Notes: generated from the sequence alone by a model not told the origin. 37,125 bases of DNA from Ministeria vibrans ATCC 50519 (GCA_943704425.1 CALSCP010001760.1:1-37125); one strand, 5' to 3'. Shown: positions 776-33,046, counted from the stretch's first letter. Program-made: numbers and translations.

Positions 776-1245
776 GTATTGTAGAGCTCTTGTTTATTCA
801 CCAGAGAACGCAATTGCAGACTCTAAGCAGAGCATGGTATTCTTCCGCTTACTCTAAAGGTGGCCTGGCGCAACACGCACCGTCGCTGGAGAATTTCTCC
901 TGCCGTCCCCTCGCAGCACTCGAGCATTACTTGCCTGATAGTTGCCTCAAACGCAGTGTCTCTAAACTCACCAGTATATACAAACCAACACATCACCACT
1001 CTGCGAGGATAAAACTAGAACGGTTGTGCCGAAATCAAGCGTCCTGCAACGCGCTGCCATCTCACCCCGAACTCACCCCTAGAATTAGGACAAAGAACAG
1101 TGCATGTCGTCAGACTGTCTCTTACCTACGTGTGTACTACCTCGCAGACTCAGACAGAACAGGGACACGAACTGCAATTACACCAAACAACCGAACGTAA
1201 ACCGTAGCCTTAACCCAGTGATCACTAGAACCCTAACCCGATTTA

Positions 1246-1901
1246 CCCAGCCGTATCATGCCACCCAGCCCGAACTATAACCCTAACCCAGCGCTATCTT
1301 GCCACCCAACTGGAACTATAACACTAACCCAGCCGCATCTTGCCACCCAACTGGAACTATAACACTATCCCAGCCGTATCATGTCATCCAGCCCGAACAA
1401 TAACACTAACTCAGCCGTATCTTGCCACCCACCCCAAACTATAACACTAACCCAGCCCTATCTTGCCATCCAGCGCTAACTATAACACTAACTCAGCCCT
1501 ATCTTGCCACCCAACTGGAACTATAACACTAACCCAGCCGTATCATGTCATCCAGCCCGAACAATAACACCAACTCAGCCGTATCATGCCACCCAGCCCG
1601 AACTATAACACTAACCCAGCCCTATCTTGCCATCCAGCGCTAACTATAACACTAACTCAGCCCTATCTTGCCACCCAACTGGAACTATAACACTAACCCA
1701 GCCGTATCTTGTCATCCAGCCCGAACAATAACACTAACTCAGCCGTATCATGCCACCCAGCCCGAACTATAACTCTAACCCAGCCCTATCTTGCCACCCA
1801 CCCCAAACTATAACACTAACCCAGCCCTATCTTGCCATCCAGCGCTAACTATAACACCAACTCAGCCCTATCTTGCCACCCAGCCCGAACAATAACACTA
1901 A
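1246..1901 (+). repeat. 41-bp tandem satellite, 16 contiguous copies, telomere-repeat-derived
   Basis: Consensus about CCCAGCCSTATCTTGCCACCCAGCCCGAACTATAACACTAA; units start at 1246+41n (unit 16 at 1861); further copies at about 1985-2025 and 2545-2610. Confidence 0.95.
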
Positions 1902-1961
1902 CACTAACCCTAACACTAACCCTAACCCTAACCCTAACCCTAACCCTAACCCTAACCCTAA
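1902..1961 (+). repeat. Interstitial telomeric repeat (CCCTAA)n
   Basis: Seven perfect CCCTAA at 1920-1961, preceded by CACTAA/CCCTAA variants; more hexamers near 2020-2036 and 2522-2545. Confidence 0.9.
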
Positions 1962-2722
1962 CCCAGCCCAAACTATAACCCTAACCCAGCCCTATCTTGC
2001 CACCCAGTCCGAACTATGACGCTAACCCTAACCCTAAGAGCACAGCTCGGTCTTAGGGTCGCCTCTAACCCTAACCCAGCCCTGTTTTGCCTCCCAAGTG
2101 CAACTATCCACCTCGACCCTCAAACAAATCTCACGTCTCAAGCATCTCTGCCTAAACCCGGTGGGCGCACGTTAAAGTCGACTATCTATCTTGCCTACCT
2201 TCTGTCGTTTCACTGCGCCATCAGAGTTTGCCTCCCTCTTGTCGCCCTTACTGACGAGACAGGAAGTTGACGGTTTCTTCTGTTGTATTGCTTCTCAGTG
2301 ATGTGCACATGCCGAGCTCTGTCTCGCCATCTCTCTCGCCACCCTGCCCTGTCTCCTCACCACAGCTAACAAAGAAGTTTATCACCCTAAGCCTTCTTCT
2401 CCGACCGCGGCGCTCACAGTCACACTGCGGTCACATGCTAACACTTCCTGTCTCTGCGACCCACTAGAAATAACATCCACTGTTTCATATTTGTATGTAT
2501 AATCTAATCTGGTAGCGACGACCTAACCCCAACCCGAACTCTAACCCAGCCGCATCTTGCCACCCAGCCCTAACAAAAACACTAACCCAGCCCTATCTCG
2601 CCACCCAGCGCTGTCTTTCCATCGTCACGGACAGCGAGACCCCATCTTACTGCCACCGGCCCGTAATATTTCCCCCATGCAACACCCTGCACCCCTTTAA
2701 ACAGAGAAGTCCCACCATTCAT

Positions 2723-3001
2723 GTCCATCACGCCAACTGATGGTTCGCATCCTCTCCTTAACAGAAGAACTCCCACGGCTTGATCTTTTCTGTTGTAATC
2801 CCACACACACATTTGGGTACTATGCAGAAGTTCAACAGCGTCTCATTTTAACTCATGTACAAGTCCATCACGCCAATTGATGGTTCACATCCTCTCCTTA
2901 ACAGAGGAACTCCCACGGCTCGATCTTTTCTGTTGTCCTCCCACGCACACATTTAGTATGCAAGAAGTACAACAGCGTCTCATTTTAACTCATGTACAAG
3001 T
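2723..3001. repeat. ~140-bp diverged tandem duplication
   Basis: GTCCATCACGCCAA...CATTTTAACTCATGTACAAG starts at 2723 and again at 2863. Confidence 0.9.
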
Positions 3002-3727
3002 ATCAGACTGCAATGGCGGCTTCATCTTCACTCTCGGCTCTCATCCCCGCGCGCCAGCCCACTCCTTCCTCTCATCTTTCTTGCGCTTCTGGTCTTAGTC
3101 TGTGTTCTTCTGCTCCTTGATTATGCACTCACACCACAGTCTCTCCTCCTCCTTTCCAAACAGATACGGGCGGAAGGGGACCCCGGGCCGTTACGTCCAC
3201 CAATTGCGCTAAATCATGCTCGCAGCACTTGCCCCCCTCCCCGACCAGTCTCAAAAGCGAACAGAGCGAGCGTGGTAGGCCAGAGTTCTTTGTCGACCAA
3301 GGTGAGATTTTGCCAAACGCTGTGTGTAGTGTCTCCCTACCACGTAACAACAAAACATGAGCCTCGCATAAGAAACATGCACACACTATCTGTTCACGTT
3401 TCTTACGTCTCGCCGAAGGAAGTTGTCGACGGAGTGTTCAACCGCGCCTCGCAGAGCTACCTCACCTGCTTGCCTGCAACAAAAGCTCTGGCTGTTCTCC
3501 AAATCCACTGTTCTGTCTTTGCCACTCTCTGTCTCTGTCTCTCTCTGACTTTTGTCTGTCTCTCACTCCCTCTCGCTTTTTTGCCTTTATGCAGAAGTGA
3601 CGCGTATCTCCAACGACAGTAATATCTCTCATTTTTTTGTTTATTATTTTCTTTCTTTGGTTTCTCTCTTTTCTTTTTCTGTTCTCTTCCTCTTCTTCTC
3701 TCTCACTTGTTGTACTCTCACTCGTTC

Positions 3728-6700
3728 TCAGCACTGTTTCAAGGAGATCGTCTCAACAGTTTCCAAGATTGTTCCATTTGCACCAAAGCCACCGCTCACA
3801 ACTAGGAAACACGCATCAAGTTCAGCGCCGCCAGGCGTCGTTGAACCTCTGAGAATGGATGCAGAAGTGCCGTGGCGAGGTGTGTTCATCTCACCGAGAC
3901 CCAACCATTGCTGTGAGGTAGTGTCAAATGCATCGATGATACCTGTGATAGTGCCATCATGCAGCACACCCCCCGCAAAGATGACAAAGCGATCCGCATG
4001 CGTGCAAGAAGCGGCATGTCGTCTCGGGTGGGCGTATGGTATGGAGCGGTGCCGAACGAGTTGTGGTGACATAGTGGGGCCCAAATTACGCAGGCGAAAC
4101 AGATCCAACATCGTCGCATTCGCCTCGGAACTACCACCGCTGACAAGAATGTAAGGACCCACAGTGTGCACAGCTGTACCATCAACACGCCCATGGGACA
4201 GGGGTGGGCCCGTGGTCCACTGCAGCGTGGGCAGATGCAGAACTTCAGTGGTAGTCAGTAGCGTGTGTCCACCGTTCAGCGTGGTGCGCCAGCCACCAGC
4301 AACAAACACCTTGTCGCCCAAGATGGCGACGCCTGGTGCTGCACGTGACTCGTTCATATGCAACAGGGAGTGCGCCGGGATGGTACCATTGTGCAGAAAC
4401 GCGTTTGAATCCTCCGGAGAGGCAAACGGCCAAGCAGATTGTCCTTCGTACTCGTGAGACATCGTAGTGTCGTGTGATGAAAAGACAATCTCCAGTGGTG
4501 CATCTTGCGCTTCCTCGGCGTACCACTGATTTCGTGGCAGTGCAATAGCGACAGTGACCTCGACCACATCGGATTCTGAGAGAGGCACGAACGGGTCGGC
4601 GCTGTCACGACCACCCGCGGTGACAATTAAAATCTCCGTGCCCCCACCGATGTCTTGTTGGCTGGAGCGTCGAGCTAAATGTGGTAGCGTCGAAGCTGCC
4701 GGTGTCTTCACACACGCCGCGCCAACGTACGCCCGTGGGCCTGACAGTAGTCCGCGTCCCGGCCAGAGTTCTATCTGGTCTCGAGCTGTCGCAATGAGGT
4801 GGCTGCGCAACTCGCTCTTTGAGTGGAATGCCAGCAGAATCACTGAAGTGTCTAGTGGACGTCCAGATCGAATGCCGCCGACAAGAAAGATCAGCCCTGC
4901 TGGAACAGGCCTAATTTTAATGTTTTCTAGTGAGCCTGCGGACGGCTCGCTACCGTTACCATAACCATGGATGTAGACTGGATCCGGGGCCGGGACAGCC
5001 TGTGGAAACGAAATGGAAAGCGTTGTGGCCCCAACAACATTCTCTGCGTCTGAGAAAATCCACACGGGTCGTGAGGATACGCGTTGGGTGTATCCATTGT
5101 GAATGGATGTGCGCATATGATCAATCTCAAGGGTGTCCACGAGCCCGTATGACTCTTTGAGATTCTCACCAGCAAGGAAGGGATCGGGACGGGGCTTTCC
5201 AGCCCGAACGCCGCCAAGAACGAGCACAATGGTGCTATTGAAAACCTCGATACAAGTCGGCTTGGCGCGTGGCGAGGCGAGATGTTTCTCTGGTAGACGA
5301 GTTGCGAGTGTGTCAGTGAGTGCATTCCGGGTGTAAAACGCCGCATCACTGCCTATGTCCCAGTTAGTCATGCACACGGGATGTGCTGTCATTAGACCAT
5401 TGTGGAAGTGAAAGTCGGAGCGGCAAACGGCTGCGGCAGGGCACTTGGAGTGCTCTACAGAGCGACACCCATCATACTGGAAGCAATTTGGATATTTCCG
5501 TTCGCTGCACGACGTGAACGCAGGGCTCAGAGTGGGTGATTGCGCAGGCACCATTGCAGCTCGTCGTGTCATAGCATTTGGGTAGAGTGGAAGAACAACT
5601 GAGCGCAAGCTCCACAAAAAGTGGGGATCAGGGTCGCTCACATTAACAGTGCTGAGCGGCACGAGTGTGTAAGCGCGGATAAGACCGCCATCGGTGAATG
5701 GTGAGAACTCAGTGTGTGCCAACCTAAGCGCAAAAGCTGTAGTGCCATTCCGGTCTTCGTCTGTCAGCAGGAGAAAGCCCTCGCTGGTTACGCGTGATGC
5801 TTGCAGCTGTGTCACCATCGAGTTCTGGTCGGGTAGAGACGATAATTTCGAGCAGAAGTCCTTGTCGTGGAGCACATTGTACACTAGGCGCCATGAGCTG
5901 TCCGTGGAATTATACAGGGCGCCGATTTGGTACATATTCGACGCTTTGATGCCCTCATTGACGTACTGCCGCACCATGACGAGACAAGTGGCTCCAGATG
6001 GAGGCCGTGGAGAGCTTTCCTGAGTCCAGGTTGCAAACGAGAAAAGGGTAGACACTTGAGGGCGCGCCATCGCGATATTGGGGTTCCACTCGATAGCAGA
6101 CCCATCCGCTACGCCGACAAGCTTGTTCAGATCGGGCGAGTCTGATCTGCCCAATGTCGGCTGTGCACAGTTGCAGTGGTCTGTGTTGATAGCCCAAGAG
6201 CATGCGTAGAATCCAAATTTGTCTTGGAATGGATCTTCCCCTGCGTTAGTAGTGTTAGGCATACCATTTCCCAAGTCGTCCGCATGTTTGTGCGCAGACG
6301 ATCCCACATTTGCGTTGCGTGAGAAGCAACGAGGTGCATGGAAGGCGAGGTTGGATGGGTAGGGCGCAGGTGTGTCGGTGTACGGAAAGTAGAGTGGCGC
6401 GTAGGGTACGTGGGACACCAGTTGCGTGAGTGTACCCACTGCCATCTGCGCTGGATCCCCAGCAACACACACGCCGTGCAGTTTGAGGTCACAGGCTGAC
6501 TGTTTCTGCCACATCATGCCAATCTGCTTATCCAACTCGGCCTGCACAAGAGGGGCCCGGGCACTCTCGTTTGTGCTGCGCAGCACAAACGCAACGAGGG
6601 AGGAGAGGGGCATGAATGTGTAGTCTGTGAATGTCATCATCTCCGACGCCTCACTGGCGTCCGGATTGAACATACTGTTGATCCAGTCTTGCACAAGGTG

Positions 6701-8067
6701 TTGACCAGATTCTCCAATCGCGCTGCTGCCCTGTTCGTGGGCAGCAAAGACAGCTTGTGCTGTTTTGTTTGTGCCACCGACGATGCGGAAAACGCTCTTG
6801 TGCAGTGCCGTGCTCGCACTCGTCGATGTGTTGTATTCCGCCGACGTGTGCGCTGAGATGAGGCCCAGATAGCTCGCCTTGGCTTCCACACGCAGGCGCG
6901 TTTCGTCCAAGGAGGTGATCGACTGGTCGCTTACGCTGCTCTCGATGGTACCGCCAACGTTGATCGACGTTGCGATGTGGCTACCGTACGTGTCGACGAA
7001 GTTGCTGTAGGCATTGCTGGCGCCAGAACACGGCGTCATTCCGTTCTGATTCTGCATTGTAGTAATTTCATATTGGACGCGCAGGTTGTGGCAGGCTGTG
7101 ATGAAGTTGTCAGTGAGTATGGACATGTTGAACATGGCGCCTGGCGCCAGCGTGTAGGAGGCGAGCTTGTGTCGAATAGCAAACTCGGCAAGAGACACAG
7201 ACTGCTCTCGTGCCGATTCACTGCTGAAGCGAGAGCTTACACTGAAGCTGAACAGGCCCAGGTTGATTCCAATGGACGCCTGTGCCACGAGTGAGTTTGC
7301 GTAGTTTTGGGCTGACTCGTAGAAGTTTTCCGTGATCCCGGTGAAAGTTGGCGCAAGCGGTCCCTGGAGGAGATTTGGGTCGGTAAGGGTGGCAAGACGA
7401 CGCTCGTGGATAAATGGACTATTCTGCTTGACACCTGGAGACAGGGAGAGCTGTAGTTCATCGGAACCAAAGGAGGAGGCACTGTTGAGATAGTCGTTGA
7501 GATCGAATGTGAGACCGATGCTTGTCCGGTTGAACGGGAAATGTGAAGCATCAGGAAGCAGTGTTGACGGATCTTCAGGTGATGGTTGTGGTGGGGCAGG
7601 ATGGTTAGTAGAATCGGGGAGCGGTGCGTTGCCCATGCTGAACTTGGACAGAAGGTAGTGCTTATGAGATTCAACTGTTTCGATGCCAAGTACGGTGAGT
7701 TGGTCGCAATGGTCGCCAAAGTGAGTTGGGCGACACATACAGCTTGGTATGTCGGTGACAGGGTCGGTAGTACACGTTCCGCCAAAGCGACAGAGGAACG
7801 AGTCGCAGTTTGCGGTGATTGTGCGGCGCGATCGAACGGCGGTGTCTGGGGCTGATGCCTCGGCTGTTTGCGAATGGAGATCCGGATATGAGGGCGTGTG
7901 GATACGCATCAATGCAGAGAATTCTTACCGGCAGCAACAGGAGGAGGAGGGCGGGGAGAGAGCGAGACAGGATCGGGTGACGGAAGCGCGTTTGACGCGG
8001 TTGTCTGCAGTAACACTGCGAGAGAAAGGGCTATCAGTTGCAGATGCAGCCAGTCAGATAGACGCAT
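3728..8067 (-). CDS. Secreted EGF-MACPF-Kelch repeat protein (perforin-like), about 1420 aa; exons 8067-7929 and 7863-3728
   Basis: Exon 1 MRLSDWLHLQLIALSLAVLLQTTASNA is a signal peptide, and a 65-nt GTAAG...AAACAG intron joins it in frame. Six-Cys EGF motif at 7807-7706; MACPF signature FVDTYGSHIATSINVGG at about 7000-6950; seven hydrophobic-GG Kelch motifs (e.g. VFVAGG...QWTTGPPL, VIFAGG...QWLGLGEMNTPR) at about 5250-3740. Confidence 0.88.
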
Positions 8068-8415
8068 TGCAACGAACGGGTCAGGGTTAGGGTTAGCGAC
8101 GGAAAAAGAAGAAGAAAAAAAATAGCCGAACGATACTCATTCAACAGACGCTTTTGAAACATAAAAATAAGCGAGAAGTGTGTACAAAAAAAATATAAGC
8201 GAGAACTGTGTACAAAATGCGAGTTGGCGTCGGATTCAATCTGACGAGGTGGATCGAGTGTTATACAGTGTTGGTGATGACTCATGCTTGACTGCGGCGG
8301 CAGCGGTATTGTAGAACGGACGAGGTGAGAGATCCCAGAACGAGAATTTTCAATTTCGTCGCAAATTGCTCAGTCAGCCTTTTCTACAAAGCAGTCCACT
8401 GACCACCGGGGACGT

Positions 8416-10010
8416 ATGTCAAACACCTTCTGCACATTGATTGTAGCGCTTGTCGGGTTGCAGCTCGCTCATTCGTTCAAAGTCCCGAACAATCGCAACT
8501 ATACCGATTTTGCCTTCACCAACGGCCAGGTCGAGGTCATTGCGACGAGTGTATGGGCACAAGAAGGCCAATTCTTCGGGTTTGCCGAACAGTTGCTCGA
8601 GCCGAACCGCGTTGTTGGCATCATCGAGCTCGGTTCAGACTCGGTCAATATGAGCATTCAGAGTATCTTCGTCGCGGACAATGGCACTGTCATTCTTGGC
8701 AACGCCGCCAATGTAGGGTCATCCTCGTGCGAGTAAGCTGAACGCGTTGAGCCGAAATCTGTTGCTATCTCATTTGGCTGTTGTCTTGTTTCTTTAGCTG
8801 GGCAAATCAGCCTTACGTTCACACGCAAGCAGTCGCTGTCGGCGAGGGAGGCATCGTGGCGGTCGTGCTACCGGACAACTCGGACGACGACAAGCCAGTT
8901 GTGAACGTGCACGTGTTCAAATTCGTCCTTGGGGACTTGATCACGGCACCCGTGCGGATGCAAACGACCAACATTTACAACGCCGCATTTGCGCCCTTGA
9001 GCATTTTCTCTTCCGTCAAGTACGTGCGCGATAGCTTGTTCGCGATGGGGTTTGTGTCAAAAATCTTCAACACAACGACTAGTCGTCCTGTGTCTGGGGT
9101 AGTTGTCCAGGCATTCCGTATCAACGTGGACGGTGGCGTGGTGGCCGGGCCACCAGAAGCGCTGCTCGACAGCATCTGTCACGACGGAGGTGAAGCAGAC
9201 ATTTTCGCGCCGTTCCCCATCGTTGAGGTGGCGGACGCGGCAAACATGACGTTGCTCGTGTCCGGGGCGATTTTGGTCTGCCCAACTGTCCTCGCCTTAG
9301 CGCGAGTAGCAGATGGTTTGAGCATCTCTGTGCTGGCAAGCACCCCTTTCCCCCCGTTTGAGGTTGGCCCGATAAGGTATCCCCTAAAGGACCCTTTGTC
9401 TCCGCCGGGAATTGCCATTGTTAATCAGACTCACGCACTTGCGCGAGTGCGTGTGCTGCGCACCAATTCAACAGTGGAAGTGGGCAACTGCGAGTACGGG
9501 TTTGCGGCAATGGCTGCCTGGGTGCTCGTGCGCACAGATCTTGAGGCACACTCGTTTGATGTCGGAGCTGAGCCCCTGTTTTGGTCTCCCTTGACACCTG
9601 CATGTGCCTTTGGAAGCCAGAATAATTTGGAGCCGATATTACAGCCGGTACTGAAAGCGTCGCAGCACGTAGGGGATACTGTTCGGCTGTTTAGCATGGA
9701 GACCATTTCAAACGCGTCACTCAACGGCACACACTTGTTCACCTTTGTCCCTACCATTATTGACTACAACCCTTTGAATGGACGTGCTCGTTTTGCAAAG
9801 GCCGATCGTGTGTACCTTGGTGTTCCGCCCGACACGAAACGCAACAAGACCACATCAAACACCTCCAGCAGTGCCTTTTATAATCTGGGACAGGCAGTGG
9901 TCGCGCTCAACGAGACAGCAGTGCTCTATGGAATACAGTTGGTCTCCGATTCTGGCCTCACCTTCACCGCAACGCTGCAAGTGATGCGACATGTGCCTGA
10001 ACTGGATTAA
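8416..10010 (+). CDS. Secreted beta-rich orphan protein, about 509 aa; exons 8416-8732 and 8798-10010
   Basis: Signal peptide MSNTFCTLIVALVGLQLAHS; a 65-nt GTAAG...TTTAG intron joins the two ORFs in frame; many N-x-S/T sequons; no family recognised. Confidence 0.75.
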
Positions 10011-10313
10011 ACATCATAAGGAGGTTGGAAGTCAGGAAAAGCTCTATTGCTTTTCACATAAAAATAATACTACCATTATCAGTTCTAGAAGAAGAAATTA
10101 ATATTATTTTTATATCACCATGGGTTTTCTCTTCGGAACCGAGTCCACATTCTCGTGTGGTTTCAATTACTTGGATGAGGTTCAATGTCGCTCTCGCCCT
10201 AGTTTTTCTTGCTTGAGAATTTGTTGAAAAGAAACAACCCATAATTAATAATGTTATTATTAATAATTATTATTGCTGTAGCGAAAAAAAAATTTTATTG
10301 TTTTATTCACGCA

Positions 10314-12477
10314 CTACATAAAACGGAGGCGGCTGCGCAATCCCACCTCATTCGAGGCGTAGGGGTTATAAGTGTGCACCACTGGTGTAGCGGAAACCTG
10401 GAGACGATCGCTTGTAGGGACGTTGCGCGCCGCGTAGATTTTCTGATCATGGGCCTCAAAGAGCCACATTGGGTCGTCTGCCTCACCGAATGCGAGGTAC
10501 CCCGATGGATCTATCAGATCGGTTGGGTCGACAGCGACGATGGAGAAATTGAACGACCCCATGCCGTACTGGCACTGGTCATTGTTGACGAGGAAGCGGG
10601 TCCCAGTGCTGGTCACGTCAAGCTGGATGGCGGTCACCTGCATGATGGCGGTATTGGATGCGGCGGGCGGCAGAGCAGCAAGCATGAGGCAGTTGGCGCC
10701 GTTGACACCTTGTGTGATCTGCCAGCCGGTGTTGCGCTTCAATACAGCCTCGCTGGTGCCGGTGGAGACAGTACACGAGTCCAAATAGAGAGACTGGCTG
10801 GCATAATCGTAGGCCAGGCAGTGGGTATCAACTTGGGCCGCCACATGAAACTGGTACAACACCTCTGTTTGTGCAAGTGTGTAGCCAATGAGACATTGGT
10901 TTGTCTCGAAAGACCAGGCACCTGGGGGACAGTCGACCTTCCATGAGCTGTGGAGATAGCTCACTATGGCATTGTCTGCAAATACGCCCATTGCATCTGC
11001 TAGCTCTTGTGTTTCGCCCAATGCGAGCGCGACCGCCACAACTACCTTTGCCATACTATCGTACTGTGGGTGCACGTAAGAAGTATGGTTGCTATCGGCA
11101 CTCTGCATCCACATTTTGTAGACATCACCGGGCGGCACGATGCCTGCGCAGTCCCCGCTCTGGACACACGATGCTGCCTGATACATTGCCTCAGCGAGTT
11201 GGTACTGAAGAGCGGGCGAGCCGCCAGTCAGCCGAACAACAATTTGACGGTCTGTTGTCGAGTTTTTGAATAAAGTGTTGATCCCCGCACCGGCATCCAG
11301 CGTCACATTATTTGTCAGCGAAGTGTACGTAGCTTTTACAGCTGCTTCCACACCTTTCTAAGGAGATGCAGCGGGTGCAGTTGGTCATGATGAGCGGTGG
11401 TGGCATGGTAGAGGAATGCGCGATTAGATATGTGTGAGTGAGTAGGCGAGTGAGTGAGGTGAGCGAATGTGTGAGTGTGAGCAGGTGAGTGAATGTGAGT
11501 GTGAGTGGGCGAGTGCCTGTTGTGTGTGCTTCTTCTTAGAACACTTCTTATATATATACTGCATACCGCTTCCATCTCAGCGTTGAAGGTCTCGCTGGCA
11601 AATATCTCAACTAGACCTCCCTCGTAGATTTTTCTCACAAAGTGGGTGCCAAAGGTGCCGATGATACTCTGCATCGCCATCAAGCCATCGCTGGCTGGTC
11701 CAGTAGTATTTGTAGTTGACTGGTTGAAAGTGTCACGTAAGTACGCGACCATGGATACCAGTGCTTGATCCCACACGAGCGGATCGAGGAGCGCGTCGCA
11801 CTGGTTGTCAGAGTGTTTGAATTCGGACGAGGAGCGAACATGAAACTTCATCTCCGAAAAGATGCTCATCTTGGTGGCGAATGAGCTGGCCTTCATCATC
11901 TTCCCTTGAATCTCTCCTAAGTAGCAGGAATACAACCCATTTATTCATGATACAGTCACGAGATCTACAACAAAAGCACAAGCAATCACTATCCAGTGAG
12001 GTAATCGCAATGGTACGCCATACCCCAGCGGGGGCTAATAAGAAGTTGAAAAAAATAAACGAGCCGTCAAGGAAATAAGCGAGAAGTTCCCAAAACGGTA
12101 AGAATCCCCCGCCCAATCGCCACACATCCCCCTACCATATACGTACCTTTAAAGCCCTTCACACCGCCGGCAATGCCGGCGCCATGGGTATACTTTTTGG
12201 AGTAATCGTACGAGTTCGTGGCACGATGGTGCTGGTGATGTAGAGTGGAGAAGGGTTCTGGTCCAGACAAAAAGCAAGGGGACGAATGCAGCGGATTCCA
12301 GTCCCGAATGACGCTGGTGCGAACTTCTTCTTGACGGGTGATGGAGCTGATATCAGCCGTGCGGCCAAGTAGTGTTGTTTTGAAGTTTTCCGCATCGGTA
12401 GCAGCCAGTAGGCTGAACAAGAACGCGATGGTAGCTACACCGACCCATTGCGATACTCTGGTGCATAGATTAGTCAT
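10314..12477 (-). CDS. Secreted MACPF-domain protein, about 574 aa; exons 12477-12147, 11916-11567 and 11357-10314
   Basis: Signal peptide (WVGVATIAFLFSLLAATDA); both GT-AG introns keep the frame; MACPF signature FGTHFVRKIYEGG at about 11655-11615; VRLTGG and YKMWMQS parallel FRIVGG and VQDWINS in the other MACPF. Confidence 0.85.
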
Positions 12478-12981
12478 CGTTGAGGAAAAGGTTAGATACT
12501 CAATAGCGGCGTAGAAGGGGGCCGGAAAAAGAATGACTAGATTAGCGCCGCGAACGTCGAAATGAGTCTGCTTGATACAACAACACAGAGCAAGTGCTAA
12601 ACGCCTAAATGTGTGTGTACGGTGCAAAAAACAATGACCAGGGTATTGTTGGATACACAGCTCTCCTTCTCAGAAAACGCCTTTTAATTTACACACAAAG
12701 GATGCGTTTCCATCGCGGACTGCAGTTTTTAGAAGAGCCTGTGCAGCTGTATGCTATCAACCCAGTTCCGGGGTATATGATTTCAGGGTATACGGTCGAG
12801 ATGCAGGGCAAAGCGCTCATTGTGGTGGTGGTTGTGGACGTCCGGAGATGCGCCGAATATTTAACTTCACCCAAAAACAACGCAAGTAAAAAACACCCTC
12901 AAGCTTACCTCAGGTCTTGGTTAGGACAGATCTGGATACTGTTTGCGACAATGGGTAAAAAATCGAAAAATGAAAACACAA

Positions 12982-13138
12982 CAGATCTCGGTGGAAGTCG
13001 TTGTATTTGACATCTATTGGAGTCGCAGTCGCTAGCGTATCACACTGATTGATCTGCCTGGTATGACACGCGTTGCGGTCGGTGGACAGAGGGAGGACAT
13101 TGAGGAAACCATCACAAAGATGTACCGCCGCTACATGA
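12982..13138 (+). pseudogene. Mx/dynamin-family GTPase fragment
   Basis: QISVEVVVFDIYWSRSR*RITLIDLPGMTRVAVGGQREDIEETITKMYRRYM matches the dynamin G3 region (Mx-type LTLIDLPGITRVAVGNQ); in-frame TAG at 13033-13035; similarity ends at the minisatellite. Confidence 0.85.
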
Positions 13139-13139
13139 C

Positions 13140-13471
13140 GTTGACTGCTCCGTGGCGACACCCTCAGGTCCAACGCTGCCGCACCCCTCTGTTGACTGCT
13201 CCGTGGCGACACCCTCGGGTCCAGTGTACTCGCGCGTCTCTGCTGAGCGGTCAGCGGCGACACCCTCAGGTCCAACGCTCCCACGCCTCTCTGTTGAGCT
13301 GTCCGTGACAACACCATCAGGTCCAACGCTCCCACGCCCCTCTGTTGAGCGGTGAGCGGATACCCTCAGATCCAGTGTACTCGCGCGTCTCTGTTGAGCT
13401 GTCCGTGACAACACCCTCAGGTCCAATGCTCTGCTTCCACACCCCTCCGTTGCCTGCTCCGTGGTGACACC
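13140..13471. repeat. 51-bp modular minisatellite, about 7 copies
   Basis: Core ACACCCTCAGGTCCA at 13158, 13209, 13260, 13311, about 13360 and 13411; partial copy at 13467. Confidence 0.9.
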
Positions 13472-13479
13472 GGGTGCTC

Positions 13480-14665
13480 TGTCGTCTCCACCAGGCCCTC
13501 ATCGCATCTCGTGCATAATTTGGAGACGTAGATGGGAAAAAGTCTCGCCGCCCTGCTCTGTCTCCTCTGCCCACCCCGACAGAGAAATCACACTACGACA
13601 GTCTCTCTGACATAGACGCACAGCCTGGTAGGTGGGCTTCTCTGTCTGAGCGCCAGGAAACACTGGGTCAAGCATTGTGTGTATAGTGGTTCGTGTGTGG
13701 TGGGTGGGCCTGTTGGGAACCTGCTGGCTCCCTCTCTCTCAAAGAAATAAACCGAGTGAAGCCCTTCTCAGCGGGCGCCTGGAGCGCCTCCAATCTATTG
13801 GCAACAGACCTGCTCTGCCCCGAGTCGTAGTCGAGAGGCCTGATTGGTGGCGAGGCATCACTCTCAGGTTGTTGCAAGATAGAACAAGCAGGACAAAAAG
13901 CCCGCTCTCAGTTGGAGATCAGCGACACGGAGAACATGTATGACTGGCTGACTATCTGTGTTGGCTAGAGGCTTGATTGGTGTGACTTACTTCTCTGATG
14001 ACAACTACAGATAGGGAAGACGGGGCTGGGTGCGAGAGAGACAGAGGGGGCTAGTGTCCGACGATCCTGCACATCGTCGACGTGAAGTCTTTGTCCGTTT
14101 TTGTTCACTTGCTGTTGAACGAACCCCGCCTGCTCTAGTCTGCTGGAACCACCCCTTTCGCGACACAAGCATATACATCTCTGTCCGTTCCGTGATGGAC
14201 CAGCAGTGACGCGGCATGAATCGCAAAAAAGAATGTCGTCATTCGGTTGATACCAGAATCCAGTTCTGAAGCCCGATTCGCGCAAAGATGTGCCGTTTGG
14301 GCGCCTGTGCGCGACTTGTGAATAGTTGTGATAAAGGATAGATAGTCTGATGACTGATCTGTCTGCCTGATCATGATTTACAGTTTTTTGTCAAAACCAA
14401 AAAAAAAAAAACCTTTTCTCTCTCATCTCTTCTCTCCTAGAAAATCTCAAATTTACCCTGGACACCCTGGACACCCTTGACATGTCCTCTTTTTCGGATT
14501 CTCTCATCACCGCACCCGGATATCTAGACAGTAGCATGTCCCCCTGAGCTGTACTCGCAATACCGTCTCAATTGGACTCACTACCTCGGCGTGGCGGTCG
14601 AAAACGAAAACCGAAAATGCCACGTCACCCTGGACACCCTGGACACAATGGAAAAAACGGCCTAG
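13480..14665. mobile_element. Possible degenerate DNA-transposon right end
   Basis: Broken reading frames; clusters of 9-bp ACCCTGGAC repeats at 14455-14481 and 14627-14644, ending in GAAAAAACGGCCTAG; no partner terminus found in the window. Confidence 0.3.
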
Positions 14666-15031
14666 CGATTGTAAATGCGCTGGCGGAGGGACCTGTATTG
14701 TCCGAACACATCAGGTAGCAGCGTAGAGACTGTGATTTCTACTGTAATGTCACGAAATACATGACAGGGAGCGGTTTCCACTCTGTTTCGAGGAGTGCAC
14801 TTGGCGTAATCTTGAGTGCAGCCTATTGGTTGATGCGTTCAAAGGCATTCAAGAGATAAAGATCGAGCTCTCAAGAACCACGAATGCGCAGACTAACAAA
14901 TGTTTAAAGGAGATATTGCCGTAAACTATTTTCATCAATCAGTACGACAGCCATCTCATGTCTGTGAGCAATTTAATGGTCGTGCCATCACCTTTGGCTT
15001 CCAACAACGGAGTAGAGCATAACTGCAGGCA

Positions 15032-15376
15032 CTACCGAGCGACAGGGTGCTCCTCGTCGTCGTCTGTGTCACTACTCGAGCTCTCCGAGTGCGGTAGTGA
15101 GGAGCAGAGCAGTTCATGTGATTCCGTGACGCACCAATGCTGGACTTTGAGGGCTTCACGCCATGGTGCGCTGGTGGGCAACTGCGTTGGTGTCGAGATG
15201 AAGAGCCGACGTGGGCGGATCCTTGGACGCCGAGGCGCGTGTGTGTCGCGCAGGGCCACGATCTCAGCCCACACCTGGCCCCAGGTGGCATCTTGGGCGA
15301 TACGTAGACTACATGGCGTGTGCGTGTCTCCTGTGAACCGAACCGTCAACTTCCACGTCTTTTCGGTCTGCGACAT
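15032..15376 (-). CDS. Small ORF with a ubiquitin-like (beta-grasp) pattern; possibly the first exon of a decayed gene
   Basis: WKLTVRF / CSLRI / DATWGQVWAEI / RRLFIS / LKVQHWCVTESHELLC follow ubiquitin-fold element order; acidic tail; no C-terminal GG. Confidence 0.45.
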   Translation of the reverse strand: MSQTEKTWKLTVRFTGDTHTPCSLRIAQDATWGQVWAEIVALRDTHAPRRPRIRPRRLFISTPTQLPTSAPWREALKVQHWCVTESHELLCSSLPHSESSSSDTDDDEEHPVAR

Positions 15377-15458
15377 TATAAAAATTTGATAGAACTTAAA
15401 AGGGCTAAATAAAAACTGGGTTTTCCACTGTTTTCCACTTTTCTGTTTTATTCCTTAT

Positions 15459-18075
15459 TCATTCTTCCTCCTCATCACCGTCTTCGTCAGCAGCAGAGAC
15501 AAAAAGGTGATCGAGACGCTCTTCAGATAGCTCCAGCACTCGATCGGACGCATGTGCACGGGTAGAGAAGTGGGCCGTGATCGCCTTGAGAGTGCGCTCT
15601 TCCTCGCACTTCGTCGCCTGCGTCGACACACCGACTAGAGCAGGCTGTAACATAGCGGCAAGATGCTCGTCACCACGTACTGACTCACCAAACTGATGCA
15701 GGCGGCGCGTGATGCTCGAGTCGGGCTGCAGTCGGGGTTCGGTGGCCACCCCCACCGGCGTTTTTCCCCACGCCGCCCTGGATGGAGCTGCGTGGCACAT
15801 GCCATCCACTACAACGAGGCCTGGCAGCTGTGCGAATGGCATTTCGTGCACGGCTCCTGTGGTCGTATGGTAAGAGAGGCGCGACACACAGCCAGCCTGA
15901 CCCTCTGTCGACATCAGAACAACAATATGGACGGCGGCTGTGCGTGCATTGAGGAGGTGCAGGAGAACATGCATGGATCGCAGCACAGTGCCGCTCGTGA
16001 ACGCAATCGCCCAGGACCCAAAGTTGGCGAGTTTCAACGTACCGTTGGTGCGTTGCCATGTCCGCTTTGGTTTGCTGCGTGTGATGCGTTCGCCCGCCTT
16101 GACCCACTTGTTGAAAAGGTCCTCACATGGGGTCATGATAATCCCCTGCAAGACGTCGCCAACATGCTCCAGTGAATTGCCAAGCACATAGTTGAGCGGC
16201 GTTGTGGTCTGGCCCCAGAGTTTTTCGCGGCGTTTGTTCGTATCGGCAAGATCACGCACAAGCGTGACACTGGGCAAGCGATCGACAAACGCCAGAGGCG
16301 AGGCCACAACGACGCGAGTGACATCCACGCCTTGGATCGTGCTTGTGAAGAACGGCAGGCGAAACTCGCGCTTGTGCCACGTTTCGTCCATGCGCCCGAG
16401 CACAAGGCGTTCGGTTTGCGCGCATCCCGCCGACTCCTGAATGTACTGCTCAACCGTCCATGTGACGTACTTGAGATGGTAGGTTTCCACAATGCTCTCG
16501 GAGACGCACAGATGGGCCAGGATGCAGAGGCTCAGAACGAGGTCACTGGAGCTGTCGGGGCCGAACATGTGCTCTGCACGCCACTGTGGGGACAGTCGCG
16601 ACAGCGCCTTGATGCCATATTTGATACAAATGGTCGCCAGCTCCGACGCAGTCTCCAGGGTATACTCGCGGCCGCGCTGGTCATCAGGGATTTTCAGCGA
16701 GCCACGACTGTGTCCGAGGCCAAGTCCGAGGCACTCGATAGCCGCGAAGAAACGTGCGACCGCATCGTGGTCTCCACGCTTGATAACCTGCTCGATTCGA
16801 CTCACTTGGTGCTTGAGGAGGCGGAAATACATAGTGCTAAAGGCGCTGTGGGAAAGCGGCCGTGGAACCAGGTGACATGGCGTGTCACGACCATCTGTCT
16901 CAATGAGTCGCACAAAAATGCCAATGTCGAACAGATTGTTGCGGTCTTCTTGAGTGATTTCGTGACGCGTTGAGTTCGGGTTGGTGTCATTAACGTCTGC
17001 ATCGGGTGGCGGGGTGTTCAGCATGCGGAAGGGGGCTGCGGTCGATTCCCTAGACTCGGGAATTGAGCTATTCGGAAACAAGACAAAAAATCTTTCGTGA
17101 GCAGTACATGGTGCTTGCCAAACTTACGGGAGCCAGTCGGGAAACATGATGTCGATAGCGTCAAACGTGGCGACCGCAACGGCACCTGGTTGCCAATCCT
17201 CTGCATGCATAGTCAGAGTGTCGATGCTGAAGTGCGTGTTCGTGATGTCTTGGAGACCGAGACCCTGTTCGCTTGTTGGCTTGGGCTCGCAAATCTTGAC
17301 TGTGCCTCCCACAATCTCGATGTTGAAATGTACCTTGTTGTCTTCTACTGCACGCTTGGCATACGAGTCCTCGACAAAGACAATCACGCCATCGCACGTT
17401 CGCATCCAAAGTGCGGCCCATCCGCTTTCACTAACACCGCTACCTTCATCGCCGATACGTGCTGGGTTGAGGGCAACGTGGAGCTCGGTCGTGACGGTGT
17501 TCAGGGCCCGCACAAAGCTTTCGTCGAGGTCGCAGGAGATGACACACAGTGGCTCGGTGTTCTGCAAGCCGAGACGTTCACGAAGTCCAGCATTTCTCGA
17601 GAAACGAGCACGCTTGGCAGGGCGCGGTGAGGAGGGAGAGAGTGGCCGCTACAGGGAAACGAAGTGAGCTCAAGAGCTCAAGAGTGAGTAAGACAAGTGG
17701 GTACTTTGTGCGAACTGGGCCCAGACGTTAGGATGTTTGCTGCTGCTGCTGCGGTGGTGGTGGTGGTGGTTGTGATGGTGGTGGTGGTGACGGCAGCAGC
17801 GGCGGCAGCGGCAGCGGTGGTAGGCGGGGATGGTCCTTGAGGCACCATGTCCTACGTTGAAACAATTGTAAGTTTGAAAACGTTCGAGGGAGCATTACCA
17901 TATTTATTGTTGCTGCAATGTTGTCAAGTTTGCTCCAACCTTGAAAAAAATAATTGAAATGAAAACACACGACCAACTATCAAAACTTACGCTGAAAAGA
18001 TAGGCTGGGCGCTTGGTCCTTCTCCGCATCAGTTGGAATGCGAAAGCCCCAATTCGAAAGATGCTTTTCTGCCAT
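15459..18075 (-). CDS. Orphan ~800-aa protein with a TIR/SEFIR-like domain; exons 18075-17991, 17939-17899, 17851-17705, 17648-17128 and 17067-15459
   Basis: All four GT-AG introns are phase-compatible (2403 nt in total). A/T low-complexity linker, RPAKRAR NLS-like motif, then LCVISCDLDESFVRAL...WMRTCDGVIVFVEDSYAKRA. Start codon uncertain. Confidence 0.65.
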
Positions 18076-19908: not shown

Positions 19909-22601
<2,693 letters not shown>

Positions 22602-22851: not shown

Positions 22852-25343
22852 CTACTTACGACGCGCACGACCCTTGCCCTTGGCGCGAGCGGTGGAAGGA
22901 GGTGGTGTGGGCGGAGGCGCCGGTGCAACCTCAACGATTGTTGCGCCTTGCATCTCCCGCACACTCTCGGGTGAGGCACTCGCAATTTGCTTTTGTGTGT
23001 CAAGAAAAAACATCAAATCTCGCACTTGCTCTTCGAGTTCTGCAATCCGTGCTTCCGATGTTTTTAGGGCTTCTCCGTGCTCTCGTGCAGAGCTCTCCAG
23101 TTTTTTCTATGTCCAATGAAAAGAAATTCACAAAAAAATTCAAAAAAAAGTAAGAGTAAGACGGACGGGCGGTGGAAACGTACTGCCCAGCCCGACTGAT
23201 TGTTTGTCAGAGACGAGTTGAATTCGCGCTCGGTCACGAGTTCGCGCAGAAGAGAAATCTGCTTCTGCTGAGCAGTGCGAGCGCGTTGGTCAGCGGCGCG
23301 CTCCTTCTTGACAGCCTCGGCCAGGGTTTGCTCCAGCTCGGAGACACGTCGTTGTGCGTCGTTGCACTGCTCTTCCATCATCCGTCCGTGCTCCTCCGCT
23401 TTCGATACCATCTCCATAAAGTATTGCCGTTGTGATTCCAGTTGGCTCGTCAACAGATAGGTATACTGCAACAAGAGAGATAGTAGATAGATAGATAGAG
23501 AGAGCGAGAGATGAGGAAGAATGAAAGAAAGTGATAGAGAGAAAAAAATAAAGTGATAGAGAGAGAAACAAAGTGATAGAAGGAAGAAAAAACAAATGAT
23601 GGAGAGAGAAGGGAGGAAGAAAGAAACAAAATGATGGAGAAAAAAAGAGGAAGAAAGAAACAAAGCGATGGAGAGAAAAATAAATATATAAGAAGATGAG
23701 AGAGCGACGAAAGACCAGCTGGTTGTCGAACCTCCAATTGAATGGCATCCACTTTCTCATCGGCATCACCGTACTCCTACGAAGAAGAACAAACGAACCA
23801 AAAATGAAACGAAACAAAACAAAAAAGAGTTGTAGAGTGCATGCGTACCGAGGCACCCTTGGGGTTGGATGCAAGGGCGACAAACCCACCGCCTGTTTTG
23901 GTCTGGATCAGCCGATGCACATATCCATCCGCAGCATAGTCCCACACGCGATTGGTCTCCATCTCCATGGCATAGCAGTGCTATGCCAGACGGGGAAGAG
24001 AGAAAGAAAGAAAGTGATAGAGAGAGGGGGGGGAGGAGACGCAAAGGAAGGGAAGGAGAATCAGCAAGAAGCAATCAAAATCAAACTCACTCCATTCCTA
24101 CTTGTGTGTCGAGAAAATGGTGGTAGGCGTGACCGTCGACATATCGACCACAACCTACGCAGAGCCATTGTCGGTGAGTAATAGGCTTTGAAAAAACGAC
24201 ACAAAGAGACTATCATAATAGAAATAATTATCACGCTACTGGCAGTGGGCACACAAAAATCCTACCAATATTGGCGCAAATGAGACAGATCCAGAGCGAC
24301 TCGGCGCGCGTGCAACCAGCTTCCATGCACTCGGTCTGCTCATCGGGTGCTTGGCAGTAGCGACACACTGGGCAACTGAAGACACAGCAAAAAAAAACCC
24401 CCCCCCCCAGGTCAGAAGGAAGCAAGATTGTTCACACTGGGGCATTGAGTTCATTGCAAGCTACGTATTACCTTCCGTCGCCCCAACGAGAAAGGCAAGA
24501 ACAATGAAAGGAGTGATCGCAGAGGGTTGTCATAATTCCTGTCGCTGACTCATCGAGACGTTCCAGACACACCGGGCAGGTAGGAAGCTCAGCAAGTGAC
24601 GAGGGTACAGCCAAGTAGTCGTGGCGGGCGCTGCCGGAGCGCGCAGATACCACGGAAATGGACGAAATGTACGCGAGATGGCACACCTCGGGTTCGAGCG
24701 AGTTGAAACGAATGCCGTTGAATGCGTTGAGAGCCTGTTCGGCTGTGTCTTCACAGTCAAACAACATCAAGGCCATGTAACGGTTGGGTGCCTGATCGCG
24801 CACAGTGCGCAGATGGACGAGCGTTCCAATGATCGGCGCAAGAAAGTCGATGAGCTCCGAGTAGTGCATGTGCATGGGCACGGCCAGCATGCAAAGCATT
24901 GTGGAGCGTGTCGGCGCGCCAGTTGAAGATACGCCCGTCGTCGTCGTGGCAGTGCTGCTCCCGGTAGTGGTGATGGTCGGGGCGTTTGTGCGCTCTTTGT
25001 GTCGATACAACTGCAAACGACCGCGCGTCACGACGACCGAGCCTCCTTTGGGATTTCCGCTTTCAAAGGCGACTTCATCAAAGAAATCCGCGCGATCGCT
25101 GGCGATAGGGTCGTTCGGTGAATCCACTGACTGTGCATCATCGGTGAGCGGCGGAGTGGCGGCCGTGTGAACTTGTCGTTGGGTCGACGAAGGCAACGCA
25201 ACTTGTTCCAGCGTTAGCAGCGACTCGCCTTTGCCCCCTAACGCCTCGTGCTGCACTTGAGGTGATGTACTAACCGTACTGCTACCGGACCTTTGGGCAC
25301 TGTCGCTCTCGGTGCGCGACACTTCCAGTTTGAGAGCGAACAT
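22852..25343 (-). CDS. BRAP: BRCA1-associated protein BRAP/IMP (BRAP2 domain, RING-H2, zf-UBP, coiled coil), multi-exon
   Basis: PNRYMALMLF...FNSLEPEVCH; ELPTCPVCLERLDES...LCDHSFHCSCL; CPVCRY; LWICLICANIGCGRY; RVWDYAADGYVHRL; YTYLLTSQLESQRQYF; LEEQVRDLMFFL. Confidence 0.95.
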
Positions 25344-25619
25344 TTGTAGGGACAGAATATGCTCAAATGTGACGCCGTGAATCAAGCTCACGGGAGGTTG
25401 TCAGACTGTAATGGAATAAAGCGATTCCGGGCAGTATTCACGCAGTAAGGGTACCGGAAAAGACGATGTAGAGAAAGAAAATTGGTGAAATTGAATATTG
25501 ATTAAAATATTCTAGTAAAAACAAACAAAAAAAAAAAAAAAAAGCATACGCCTACGCCGTGTACACCTTTCATGCAAATCATGTTCACATTATTGTTATG
25601 GAAAGGACAAAAAAAAAGA

Positions 25620-30401: not shown

Positions 30402-33046
30402 AATAATACGCACATGCGCAACAATTATATTTAAAATGTTAAAAATAAGGTCAATGTATACCTTTCCAGTAAGAGCGTCAGTGACGGCATCCAGGGCCTT
30501 ACGAAAATCGTGACCCATCTGCTGAATAGCCGACAGCCGTTGTTCCGCACTTAGCGGGTCCCCAAAAGTACCGCTGTGAAAGAAACAGAAAAAAAGGAAA
30601 AGGAAATCGAAATGAGACAATATGATAGAAACAAACAAAACAATTTATAAAAATATAATAATAATTAATTAATTATAATCATACGGAAGTTCGATGGCGG
30701 CGTCGACAGCGGCATGGCGCACCAAGAGAGTGGCAATGTCAGTGCCAATGGTCTTGAGAAGGTGACGTTCAAGTAGGCCAATGATCTTGTCGGGAGCAGT
30801 GACACTGGCAATGCCCTTTTGAAAGAGGACCAATGACTCGAAGAGAGGCGGTACACGCTCAAGCGTCTCCTTTCGTGCCTTCTTGAGAGCTGATTCAGAT
30901 TGCATGGCTGTCGACAAAACCACCTCATGCATAGCTCGATCAAGAGCGGCGCGCAGCGGACGTTCAAAGAGGGCCGCTAGTGCCTCAAGGAACTCATCGG
31001 AGAACTCGTCGGCGTCCGACTCGCTCATGCTCTGTGCCGACGCGAGATGGGCTCTCACCAATGAGCAGATTTCGGTGAGGGTGAATGTGGTAGAGGCGTC
31101 GGGAGTGGGCGCAGGTGTCGTCGACGTACTGTTGCCGCCGCCCTTGCCCTTACTCTTGCCCGTTCCCTGTCCACCACCCTTCTTGCCCTTTTTGCCTTTC
31201 GCACGCGAAGTGCTACCCCAGTCATCGTCGTCGTCCGACGCCACCGTTCCAATCACCAACGCATCGCCTTGTTGTCCACGCTGTTTGCGTCGCTGCTGCG
31301 ACTGCGACTGTGACTGCGACTGTGACTGTGACTGTGACGCTACCGCCGCGCTGTCATCCGTGCTCGTGCTCTGATTTCGTGACGCTGTTCCGACCACAGT
31401 CACAGTCCTAGCAAATGAGAAGAAGCAGTGGAGAGAACGAGATGAACAAGGAGAGCGTGAATCAAAAGTGTGAAGATTTTAGGTGGTGTCTGGCTTACTT
31501 TGCTTTGGCCGCGTGGTGGACACGTTCTTTGATAGAGCCTTCAAAGATATTCATGTTGGTTTCAACGAAAGTCTGCGGGAAAGAAGACGAGATGAAAACA
31601 TGTTGGTGGTCAAACAAAAGTGTAGCAGCGGTACCTTGGGCACGACGTATGTGTCGCAAAGGATATGGCAAGCTGAGGAGCTAAAGGCAGGACAGTGGGT
31701 GGTAAGAAGACAGCGGATGTCGTCTGGAGTGAGTGATGGGGGCAGCAAGGGCTCGACGTTACACCAAGTGCGAGTTTCGACAGCGTGTTCGACGGCCGCA
31801 TCGGCACGGGCAACAAGAGAGGGCGCAACCGCGCACGACTCGAGCTGGAGAGCCGAAGCAAATCGCTTTTTGGTGTAGCCCGCGGGGTCTTCGCCGATGT
31901 CAAGTCGAGCCAAGGTGTCGTAGCCAATGAGGGCATTTTGGCTGTAGAACGAGTTGATCCAGTCCGTCTGGGTCTTCATAAACACATTCGGTGTGTACTT
32001 GCCCTTTCCTTGGCGACCCTGTACAGTACCACTGAGAAGTGCATGGGTGGAGGAGGTGAGTTCGAGGGCGTATGCGCCCAGAAGATCTGCGTCGAAGCCG
32101 AGTGAGGTCGCAAGCGAGACAGTGTTTGTGGGACGAGTGACGCCACAAAGGGCACCGCGCATACGAGCTTGTTCGCGCGCACGATACGCTTCAGTGACAA
32201 TCATAGGGAGACGTGAGAGCTCGAGCGAGCCATGGATGAGCGTGCCCATGCGACTTTGCAGGTGAGGCAGGACGAACTCAGTGGCAAACTGGAAGCGTTT
32301 ACACACGTCCGCCACCGAAATGTTTCCCGACTCTTGAACAAGTTCGTTTACTTCCATTGCCATTGAGTCAAGGTAGTCTCTGAGTAGCGAAGAAATAATT
32401 AGCGAAGAAGAACAAGAAGTATAAACTTCGTCTGGTTAGGTTTACGTCGTGATGATTTCGCCGTTGACAAGCTGCAGACGTGGATCGTTCTTCACGACAG
32501 TGCCCACCTTGCCTTCAATGTGGTAGAACTCAACGTTGAGCAGTTGGGGCAAGTCGGTGACATTGATTCGACCTAAGAAGGAAGGAAAGAATGATGGATT
32601 GTCTTGTGACACGGACAAGAGGAAGAGGGGGCAAAGACAAAGTCGCGGCGGTGAGGTACAATACAAGAGAGACACGGGCGCCACGTCGTCCAGTGCGCAT
32701 GTGGCAGACAGAGACGAAAGAGAGGAGAGGGAGCGAGAGGGCGAGGGAGGAGAGGGCGAGAGGCAAGCAGACCTTGGTGGGCATCAACCTCGTCGCGGAT
32801 TTCACGCTCAAGTTGCTGTGGGGTCAGATACTCCTTGCCGTCGACAGTGTAAATGACCTCTAGAAGCTTCATCGCCTGCACGAAAGTGTGTGAGTGTGGT
32901 TGTGGCTGGCGTGTCAGTGCGCAGACGAAACTTACAATAAGTTTTGCGACGATTTCAATACAGTTTCGCTCGCTCATGCGCACAGAGCTAGTGGCCGCCT
33001 GGGCCGATGCAAGCTGTGCTTGGAGGGCGCGTAGTTCGTCGTCCAT
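29797..33046 (-). CDS. UFL1: E3 UFM1-protein ligase 1, multi-exon
   Basis: [16 protein letters not shown]...[14 protein letters not shown]; [24 protein letters not shown]; GRINVTDL; [13 protein letters not shown]; [10 protein letters not shown]; VNAPGSCVP. Confidence 0.95.

Follow-up and report, generated by a model that had tools for sequence, protein, structure and literature searches.

In proteins of the MACPF/CDC fold, two clusters of helices refold into beta-hairpins. The fungal aegerolysin/MACPF toxins, such as OlyA/PlyB and NigA2/NigB1, are encoded by bidirectional gene pairs, some of which lie near telomeres (PMC7763983). Mx-type proteins are reported to be ancient and widespread in eukaryotes (PMC11326297). 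Here we analyzed a stretch of DNA from Ministeria vibrans ATCC 50519, the whole 37,125-base contig C1760 (hereafter the window) of an assembly of 29.7 Mb in 2,860 contigs, with the region 3728-18075 as the subject of study; a preliminary description of this region had seen in it a candidate defence island with two MACPF genes. The window is eukaryotic in character, with short GT-AG introns and microsatellites (Tandem Repeats Finder, TRF). Its long open frames might point to prokaryote-like or trypanosomatid DNA, but the clean GT-AG introns and the size of the genome led us to reject this. We find that its left 18 kb is probably a subtelomere-like, repeat-rich patch of lineage-specific genes, which holds an old tandem pair of MACPF genes together with an otherwise unrelated assortment. 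The locus resembles chromosome-end DNA because it combines private genes and the scrap of a telomere-adjacent gene family with several kinds of repeat, namely an interstitial telomere-type tract, satellite and minisatellite arrays and dispersed repeats, and the genes of the region have no detectable relatives outside this lineage. These same features support the earlier characterization of the region as a fast-turnover locus, here of the chromosome-end type.

The spliced gene models of the region are intact. All gene models have GT-AG introns and total lengths divisible by three, and the supposed broken frames are in fact ordinary introns, as apparently broken frames in the M. vibrans genome usually are. 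The open reading frames (ORFs) are long (1394, 540, 409 and 345 codons), their canonical introns restore the frame, and a codon-usage test preferred the called frame in every spliced gene model. Each of these properties speaks against a gene graveyard or an assembly artefact, in which the ORFs would be pseudogenes in decay or frames left open by chance in GC-rich repeat DNA. Local decay is certainly present, in the form of an Mx-like relic, the minisatellite and dispersed repeats, and the left end of the contig is 100% identical to sequence at the end of another contig. However, the public assembly of read set DRR328265, which was made independently, agrees with positions 12097-17859 at 99.98% identity, and this part is therefore no assembly accident; furthermore, one family of secreted proteins encoded here is under purifying selection, as described below. 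We consider decay or artefact a very improbable explanation of the locus as a whole. It should be noted that spliced gene models were searched exon by exon, each exon separately, and the tests of MACPF gene 2 and of the 757-aa orphan therefore had lower power.

The evidence for a MACPF protein is strongest in gene 1, whose product comprises, in order, a signal peptide, an EGF-like six-cysteine module, a MACPF domain, a Cys-rich middle and a Kelch propeller. The 1394-codon ORF matched the Pfam MACPF profile (PF01823, gathering cut-off 21.5 bits) at 32.9 bits (E 9.6e-8, profile positions 2-179), and in a six-frame scan of the 29.7-Mb genome, in which it scored 35.3 bits, it was the sole match to PF01823. 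The best MACPF chain in the PDB was Mpf2Ba1, which aligned to ORF residues 299-396 (E 0.0014). The signature, YGSHI-ATSINV-GG, fits the pattern Y/W-G-T/S-H-F/Y-x6-G-G except that Ile replaces Phe/Tyr. Kelch repeats were recognized at the C-terminus (Kelch_1, 48 bits in Pfam), and a PDB sequence search with the same ORF matched Kelch propeller chains to residues 1181-1362. The EGF-like module was called from its Cys pattern alone and has no Pfam match, and the upstream exon (8067-7929) contributes the ATG and the signal-peptide-like start and joins in frame. No relatives of gene 1 were found by a word search of 5.8 billion proteins or by a scan of metagenome contigs, and in the literature searched no combination of EGF-like, MACPF and Kelch parts was found in a protist. 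Judged from sequence, this architecture has no detectable relatives.

The three seemingly broken frames further to the right are the three exons of a second gene, joined in frame across GT-AG introns of 230 nt and 209 nt, and the product begins with a signal-peptide-like sequence. Exon 2 carries the signature FGTHF-VRKIYE-GG (FGTHF-x6-GG) and scored 19.1 bits (E 0.0015) against Pfam MACPF, under the 21.5-bit cut-off, and exon 3, searched separately, gave no Pfam MACPF match; searching the exons apart lowers the score that can be attained. The exon 2 motif aligns to the signature region of gene 1 (BLASTP E 0.002), and a local alignment of exon 2 with gene 1 reached a score of 56, which was equalled by 1 of 300 shuffles. 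Similarly, exon 3 begins with 68 residues that align to the immediately following segment of gene 1, with a score equalled by 16 of 300 shuffles, and the segment common to the two proteins is rich in Ser, Thr and Ala and terminates in RIVGG or RLTGG. Because homology predicts such collinear placement, we rate gene 2 as a probable MACPF gene, an assignment that the signature and the collinearity of exons 2 and 3 with gene 1 make quite likely. Of the two MACPF-signature genes first proposed, then, gene 1 is confirmed by its Pfam and PDB matches, while gene 2 stands as probable. Gene 2 is single-copy in the genome, and a word search with exon 3 found no relatives outside it. The dispersed repeat in its intron 1 has more than 30 copies on many contigs, at 81-96% identity, and resembles a miniature inverted-repeat transposable element (MITE) or a short interspersed element (SINE).

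MACPF genes 1 and 2 are the sole MACPF-type genes detectable in the genome, and they lie 2.4 kb apart with one gene between them. Since the pair is adjacent and its identity around the signature is only about 30%, an old tandem duplication would be the simplest account of its origin. The coordinates of these genes and of the other features of the window are given in Table 1.

Table 1. Features of the M. vibrans window, in positions of the whole contig
Feature	Position	Strand	Details
41-bp satellite grading into (TAACCC)n	1245-2036	+	Telomere-type, interstitial; some 1.2-2.0 kb in from the contig end
MACPF gene 1	3728-8067	-	Two exons, 8067-7929 and 7863-3728; 65-nt GTAAGA..AG intron; 1424 aa
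Telomere-like tract TAACCCTAACCCT	8083-8095	-	16 nt upstream of the MACPF gene 1 ATG, inside the 348-bp spacer
Secreted 509-aa gene	8416-10010	+	Exons 8416-8732 and 8798-10010; 65-nt GTAAGC..AG intron, 8733-8797
Probable MACPF gene 2	10314-12477	-	Exons 12477-12147, 11916-11567 and 11357-10314; 574 aa
Dispersed repeat	11918-12036		About 110 bp; in intron 1 of MACPF gene 2
Mx-like dynamin relic, rearranged	12802-13140	+	340 nt; parent copies on contigs C2170, C654 and C2175
51-bp minisatellite	13140-13486		TRF
Dispersed repeat	14409-14872		About 460 bp; two inverted copies on contig C1645
114-codon ORF (first described as ubiquitin-like)	15035-15376	-	Start lies 83 nt past the upstream gene's stop
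757-aa orphan gene (first described as TIR/SEFIR-like)	15459-17848	-	Exons 17848-17705, 17648-17128 and 17067-15459
Inturned-like longin domain exon	21378-21950		Conserved gene, right flank
BRAP2 with RING, exon(s)	24468-25391		Conserved gene, right flank
UFL1 exon(s)	30669-32363		Conserved gene, right flank

Head-to-head with MACPF gene 1, across a bidirectional spacer of 348 bp, lies the gene for a 509-aa protein with a signal-peptide-like start; the two ORFs that the preliminary description had listed here form this one gene, joined in frame. The spacer contains the telomere-like tract TAACCCTAACCCT, for which the chance expectation is 0; it may mark a past telomere-healing event or serve as a promoter element. 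The 509-aa gene has two paralogs, both open, at C1968:8553-10484 (95% amino acid identity) and C437:41630-43163 (62%), and both keep the position of the intron. A full HMMER search of 1.84 billion representative proteins matched two proteins, one at 95% to the C437 copy and the other a 126-aa fragment at about 78%. From these sequence comparisons the family seems to have three or four members and to be confined to this lineage. The ratio of nonsynonymous to synonymous substitution rates (dN/dS) was 0.27 against the distant copy and 0.78 against the recent copy; the former value indicates that the family is real and constrained, and dN/dS gave no whole-gene signal of positive selection. The protein had no match in Pfam (8799-10010, E<=10), NCBIfam or PADLOC.

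This arrangement suggests a second explanation, namely that the locus is a multi-component secreted pore-forming cassette in which the 509-aa protein would bind the membrane for one or both MACPF proteins or otherwise help them, as aegerolysins do for their MACPF partners in fungi. The head-to-head placement has a precedent in the bidirectional aegerolysin/MACPF pairs of fungi (PMC7763983), all three products start with signal-peptide-like sequences, and the purifying selection on the 509-aa family (dN/dS 0.27) fits a functional partner. The paralogs nevertheless tell against it: both lie beside unrelated genes, namely a Trypsin_2-like ORF, a PH-domain ORF and a Roc-like ORF, and neither lies beside a MACPF gene. 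No synteny was found between the locus and the paralog loci, the duplication to C1968 took no more than the gene with the 246 bp that precede its ATG, and neither Pfam (E<=10) nor NCBIfam recognized an aegerolysin or other lipid-binding domain in the protein. We regard such a cassette as unlikely. By analogy with the fungal toxins, one may go a step further and picture the head-to-head pair, perhaps with the second MACPF protein, as a new multi-component pore-forming weapon that the Kelch propeller would aim and whose binding or assembly the private, beta-rich partner would aid; this elaboration is more doubtful still. If true, the cassette would be the protist counterpart, in a unicellular relative of animals, of the aegerolysin/MACPF toxins of fungi. 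The same paralogs, present elsewhere in the genome and never next to a MACPF gene, show that 8416-10010 is no genuine orphan within the genome, and they weigh against its proposal as an immune candidate. In a subtelomere-like patch with an old MACPF pair, the 509-aa gene would instead be one of three intact genes for secreted proteins that form the core of the locus, the others being the EGF-like/MACPF/Kelch gene and the diverged second MACPF gene.

The Mx-like element beyond MACPF gene 2 is composed of two pieces. The first (12802-13041, 240 nt) is the inverted upstream region of the gene copy on contig C2170, to which it is 88% identical, and the second (13040-13140) consists of 101 nt of GTPase coding sequence that matches full-length genes on three contigs, C2170, C654 and C2175, at 94-95% identity. 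The plus-frame peptide of the relic (12946-13137) contains RITLIDLPGMTRVAVGGQREDIEETITKMYRRYM, with an in-frame TAG just before the coding piece, and the match to Dynamin_N reached 20.4 bits (cut-off 27) over profile positions 69-126 only, with the TAG inside. The 51-bp minisatellite truncates the relic on its right, and a complete GTPase, middle domain and stalk in an open frame are not present in 12802-13140. The element is a dead, rearranged scrap of an Mx-like gene.

The parent genes encode 784 aa with Dynamin_N and Dynamin_M domains and exist in at least three near-identical copies. In the PDB they matched human Mx1 best (1.7e-50, 175 bits), followed by Mx2 (148 bits) and dynamin-1 (5e-39, 138 bits), a ranking which suggests that the source of the relic was an Mx-like gene and not a classical dynamin. 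The earlier statement that this dynamin fragment is most like Mx therefore holds for the family, because its parents match human Mx1 ahead of dynamin-1; the piece at this site is 340 nt of stop-containing DNA and not a gene. The start of contig C2170 is a true chromosome end: bases 1-97 are (CTAACC)16, ORFs with TPR_12/TPR_10 repeats come next (99-1004, 2213-3166), and the intact 784-aa gene at 6054-8408 lies 6 kb from the terminal repeat. The near-identical copies are at 2774-5068 on C654 and at about 112.3-112.9 kb on C2175. The Mx-like family is thus multi-copy and at least partly subtelomeric, with scraps at other chromosome ends, which suggests active turnover. The scrap in our window was probably left by exchange between chromosome ends.

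Further to the right, the 114-codon ORF at 15035-15376 had been described as ubiquitin-like (Ubl). Its frame is the best of six on codon usage, marginally (0.045 vs -0.012), and its coding status is weakly supported. The ORF had no match at E<=10 in Pfam or the PDB; a genome scan with PF00240 gave no match in the window and 33 matches elsewhere, and comparison with an alignment of four Ubl domains of the same genome returned an hhalign probability of 0.07%. A single-sequence AlphaFold2 (AF2) model was of middling quality, with a predicted local distance difference test score (pLDDT) of 60.8 and a predicted template modelling score (pTM) of 0.50, and showed the element order b-b-a-b-a-b, which would be compatible with a beta-grasp, the fold being unproven. 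Searches with this model gave a best Foldseek E of 1.9 and a best VIA-align Z of 4.5, under the noise level of that tool, and the matches comprised a few beta-grasp domains amid many unrelated folds. The protein has no C-terminal Gly-Gly and ends in DDDEEHPVAR, within an acidic Ser/Asp tail. Splicing of the ORF onto the upstream gene was also considered; the two were kept separate because no donor/acceptor pair restoring the frame was found, and the spacer between them is AT-rich and holds AATAAA. The Ubl call thus fails in Pfam, the PDB and hhalign and has no significant structural match in Foldseek or VIA-align.

The adjacent 757-aa gene, first described as TIR/SEFIR-like, has introns of 56 nt (GTACCC..AG) and 60 nt (GTAAGT..AG) that keep the frame, and its codon-usage signal is strong. 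The protein lacks a signal peptide; its N-terminus is rich in Ala and Thr, its tail is acidic, and it contains the basic stretch PAKRARF. The exon at 17648-17128 had no match in Pfam (E<=10), PADLOC, NCBIfam or the PDB (E<=10, phmmer), and a scan with PF01582 at E<=1 found nothing in the window and ten TIR matches on other contigs. When this exon was compared with a profile built from six of the genome's own TIR domains, hhalign gave a probability of 0.16% over 8 columns, and its single-sequence AF2 model (mean pLDDT 32) was unusable. The gene has no paralogs in the genome and no outside relatives in a word search of proteins, which at best recovered the gene's own product, or in a metagenome scan, and the Atlas search gave no usable match. 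A TIR/SEFIR identity was therefore rejected, as it fails every profile and sequence test, including the genome's own TIR profile, and on present evidence the gene appears to be a real orphan rather than a TIR gene. As for the genome's own TIR genes, of which six were read, in two (on C1006 and C1920) the frame enters AT-rich DNA with runs of Ile and Asn codons after about 90 residues, and these stretches are probably introns at the same position in the domain; in a third (C2373) a break in the TIR frame occurs near that position, after which the same frame continues.

These results bear directly on the preliminary proposal of a eukaryotic defence island, analogous to those of prokaryotes, that keeps MACPF, Mx, Ubl and TIR modules together and whose orphans would be new immune components. 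Two MACPF-type genes do lie side by side, the relic does come from an Mx-like family, and the C2170 copy of that family stands beside TPR_10/TPR_12 ORFs at a telomere. However, two of the four modules are unsupported, as the TIR call failed in every profile and sequence test, the real TIR genes of this genome lying on other contigs, and the Ubl call failed on sequence, with no significant structural match; and a third, the Mx piece, is 340 nt of dead, rearranged, stop-containing DNA. The preliminary description had itself stated that failure of the TIR and Ubl calls in profile or structure searches would tell against the island, and this is what was found for TIR and, on sequence, for Ubl. The orphans can therefore not be called immune components by association. 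The neighbours of the 509-aa paralogs are unrelated, and the 41-bp satellite, for which a genome-wide test of clustering with MACPF, Mx and TIR genes had been proposed, occurs only at this locus and therefore offers no clustering to test. After checking, the MACPF pair comprises the only attack- or immune-type genes left in the region, and tandem duplication yields just such adjacent pairs. We consider a defence island improbable.

The repeats of the region fit a subtelomere-like patch, and the telomere-derived repeats and the satellite first reported are indeed present, as the (TAACCC)n tract with the 41-bp satellite. Within 1245-2036, CCCTAACCCTAA occurs 7 times against 0 expected, and a further 92-bp piece of the satellite (85% identity) is found at 2521-2612; elsewhere in the assembly the satellite was not found. 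TTAGGG-type telomere repeats stand at many contig ends of the assembly, among the matches listed. It weighs against the subtelomeric reading with its MACPF pair that the telomere-type tract is interstitial, with the contig extending 1.2 kb past it, and that gene 2 remains under the Pfam cut-off. We still regard a subtelomere-like patch with an old MACPF pair as the probable explanation. Its remainder would be unrelated to the pair, comprising the Mx-like scrap, the minisatellite, the dispersed repeats, the small uncertain ORF and the 757-aa orphan.

At the far left, positions 634-742 match the opening 109 bases of contig C151 at 100% identity and positions 742-971 are 83% identical to C699:1150-1368; the left end of the contig is repeat DNA or an overlap with another contig. 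Between the minisatellite and the 114-codon ORF, no supported gene was found in 13486-14900; the two inverted copies on C1645 of the dispersed repeat in this interval (508-997 and 5947-6301) flank a 7tm_2 receptor fragment and the ORF of a long interspersed element (LINE) with endonuclease and reverse transcriptase. Housekeeping genes had been said to begin abruptly at about 18.4 kb. Conserved genes do lie to the right, the first at about 21.4 kb, but the ORFs between 18.8 and 20.4 kb had no Pfam match, and the stated boundary is therefore only approximate; TAT/TTA and GT microsatellites separate the Inturned-like, BRAP2 and UFL1 exons.

By analogy with known MACPF proteins, the two proteins of the pair may be secreted and attack prey or microbes by forming pores; the Kelch propeller is the putative targeting part of the gene 1 protein. 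The pair, the sole MACPF-type genes detectable in a unicellular close relative of animals, bears on how weapons of the perforin type arose before there was animal immunity.

Compared with known MACPF proteins (PF01823, for example the Pseudomonas insecticidal protein Mpf2Ba1, PDB 8b6u), gene 1 exceeds the Pfam threshold and matches the signature region, gene 2 has the [FY]-G-[TS]-H-x7-GG motif and the subsequent Ser/Thr/Ala-rich segment ending in GG, and both products look secreted. They differ in that word search and metagenome scan found no relatives, that gene 2 lies below the Pfam cut-off and that pore formation is here a prediction. As in the fungal aegerolysin/MACPF toxins, a secreted non-MACPF gene stands head-to-head with a MACPF gene; the M. 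vibrans partner, in contrast, has 509 aa and no aegerolysin domain (Pfam, E<=10), and its paralogs are unpaired with MACPF genes. The likeness to prokaryotic defence islands is confined to the idea that the neighbours of defence genes may be new defence genes, whereas, of the four modules claimed here, the TIR and Ubl calls lack support and the Mx piece is dead DNA. With regard to Mx-type GTPases (PMC11326297), the parent family of M. vibrans matches human Mx1 best and has Dynamin_N and Dynamin_M, and its multiple copies fit the recent view of Mx as ancient, whereas the region itself holds only a 101-nt coding scrap, with a stop, joined to inverted upstream DNA. Finally, although most genes here are single-copy and do not form large variant families, the locus shares with the subtelomeric lineage-specific families of eukaryotic microbes its telomere-type and other repeats, gene fragments common to chromosome ends, genes that lack outside relatives and an abrupt stop at conserved genes.

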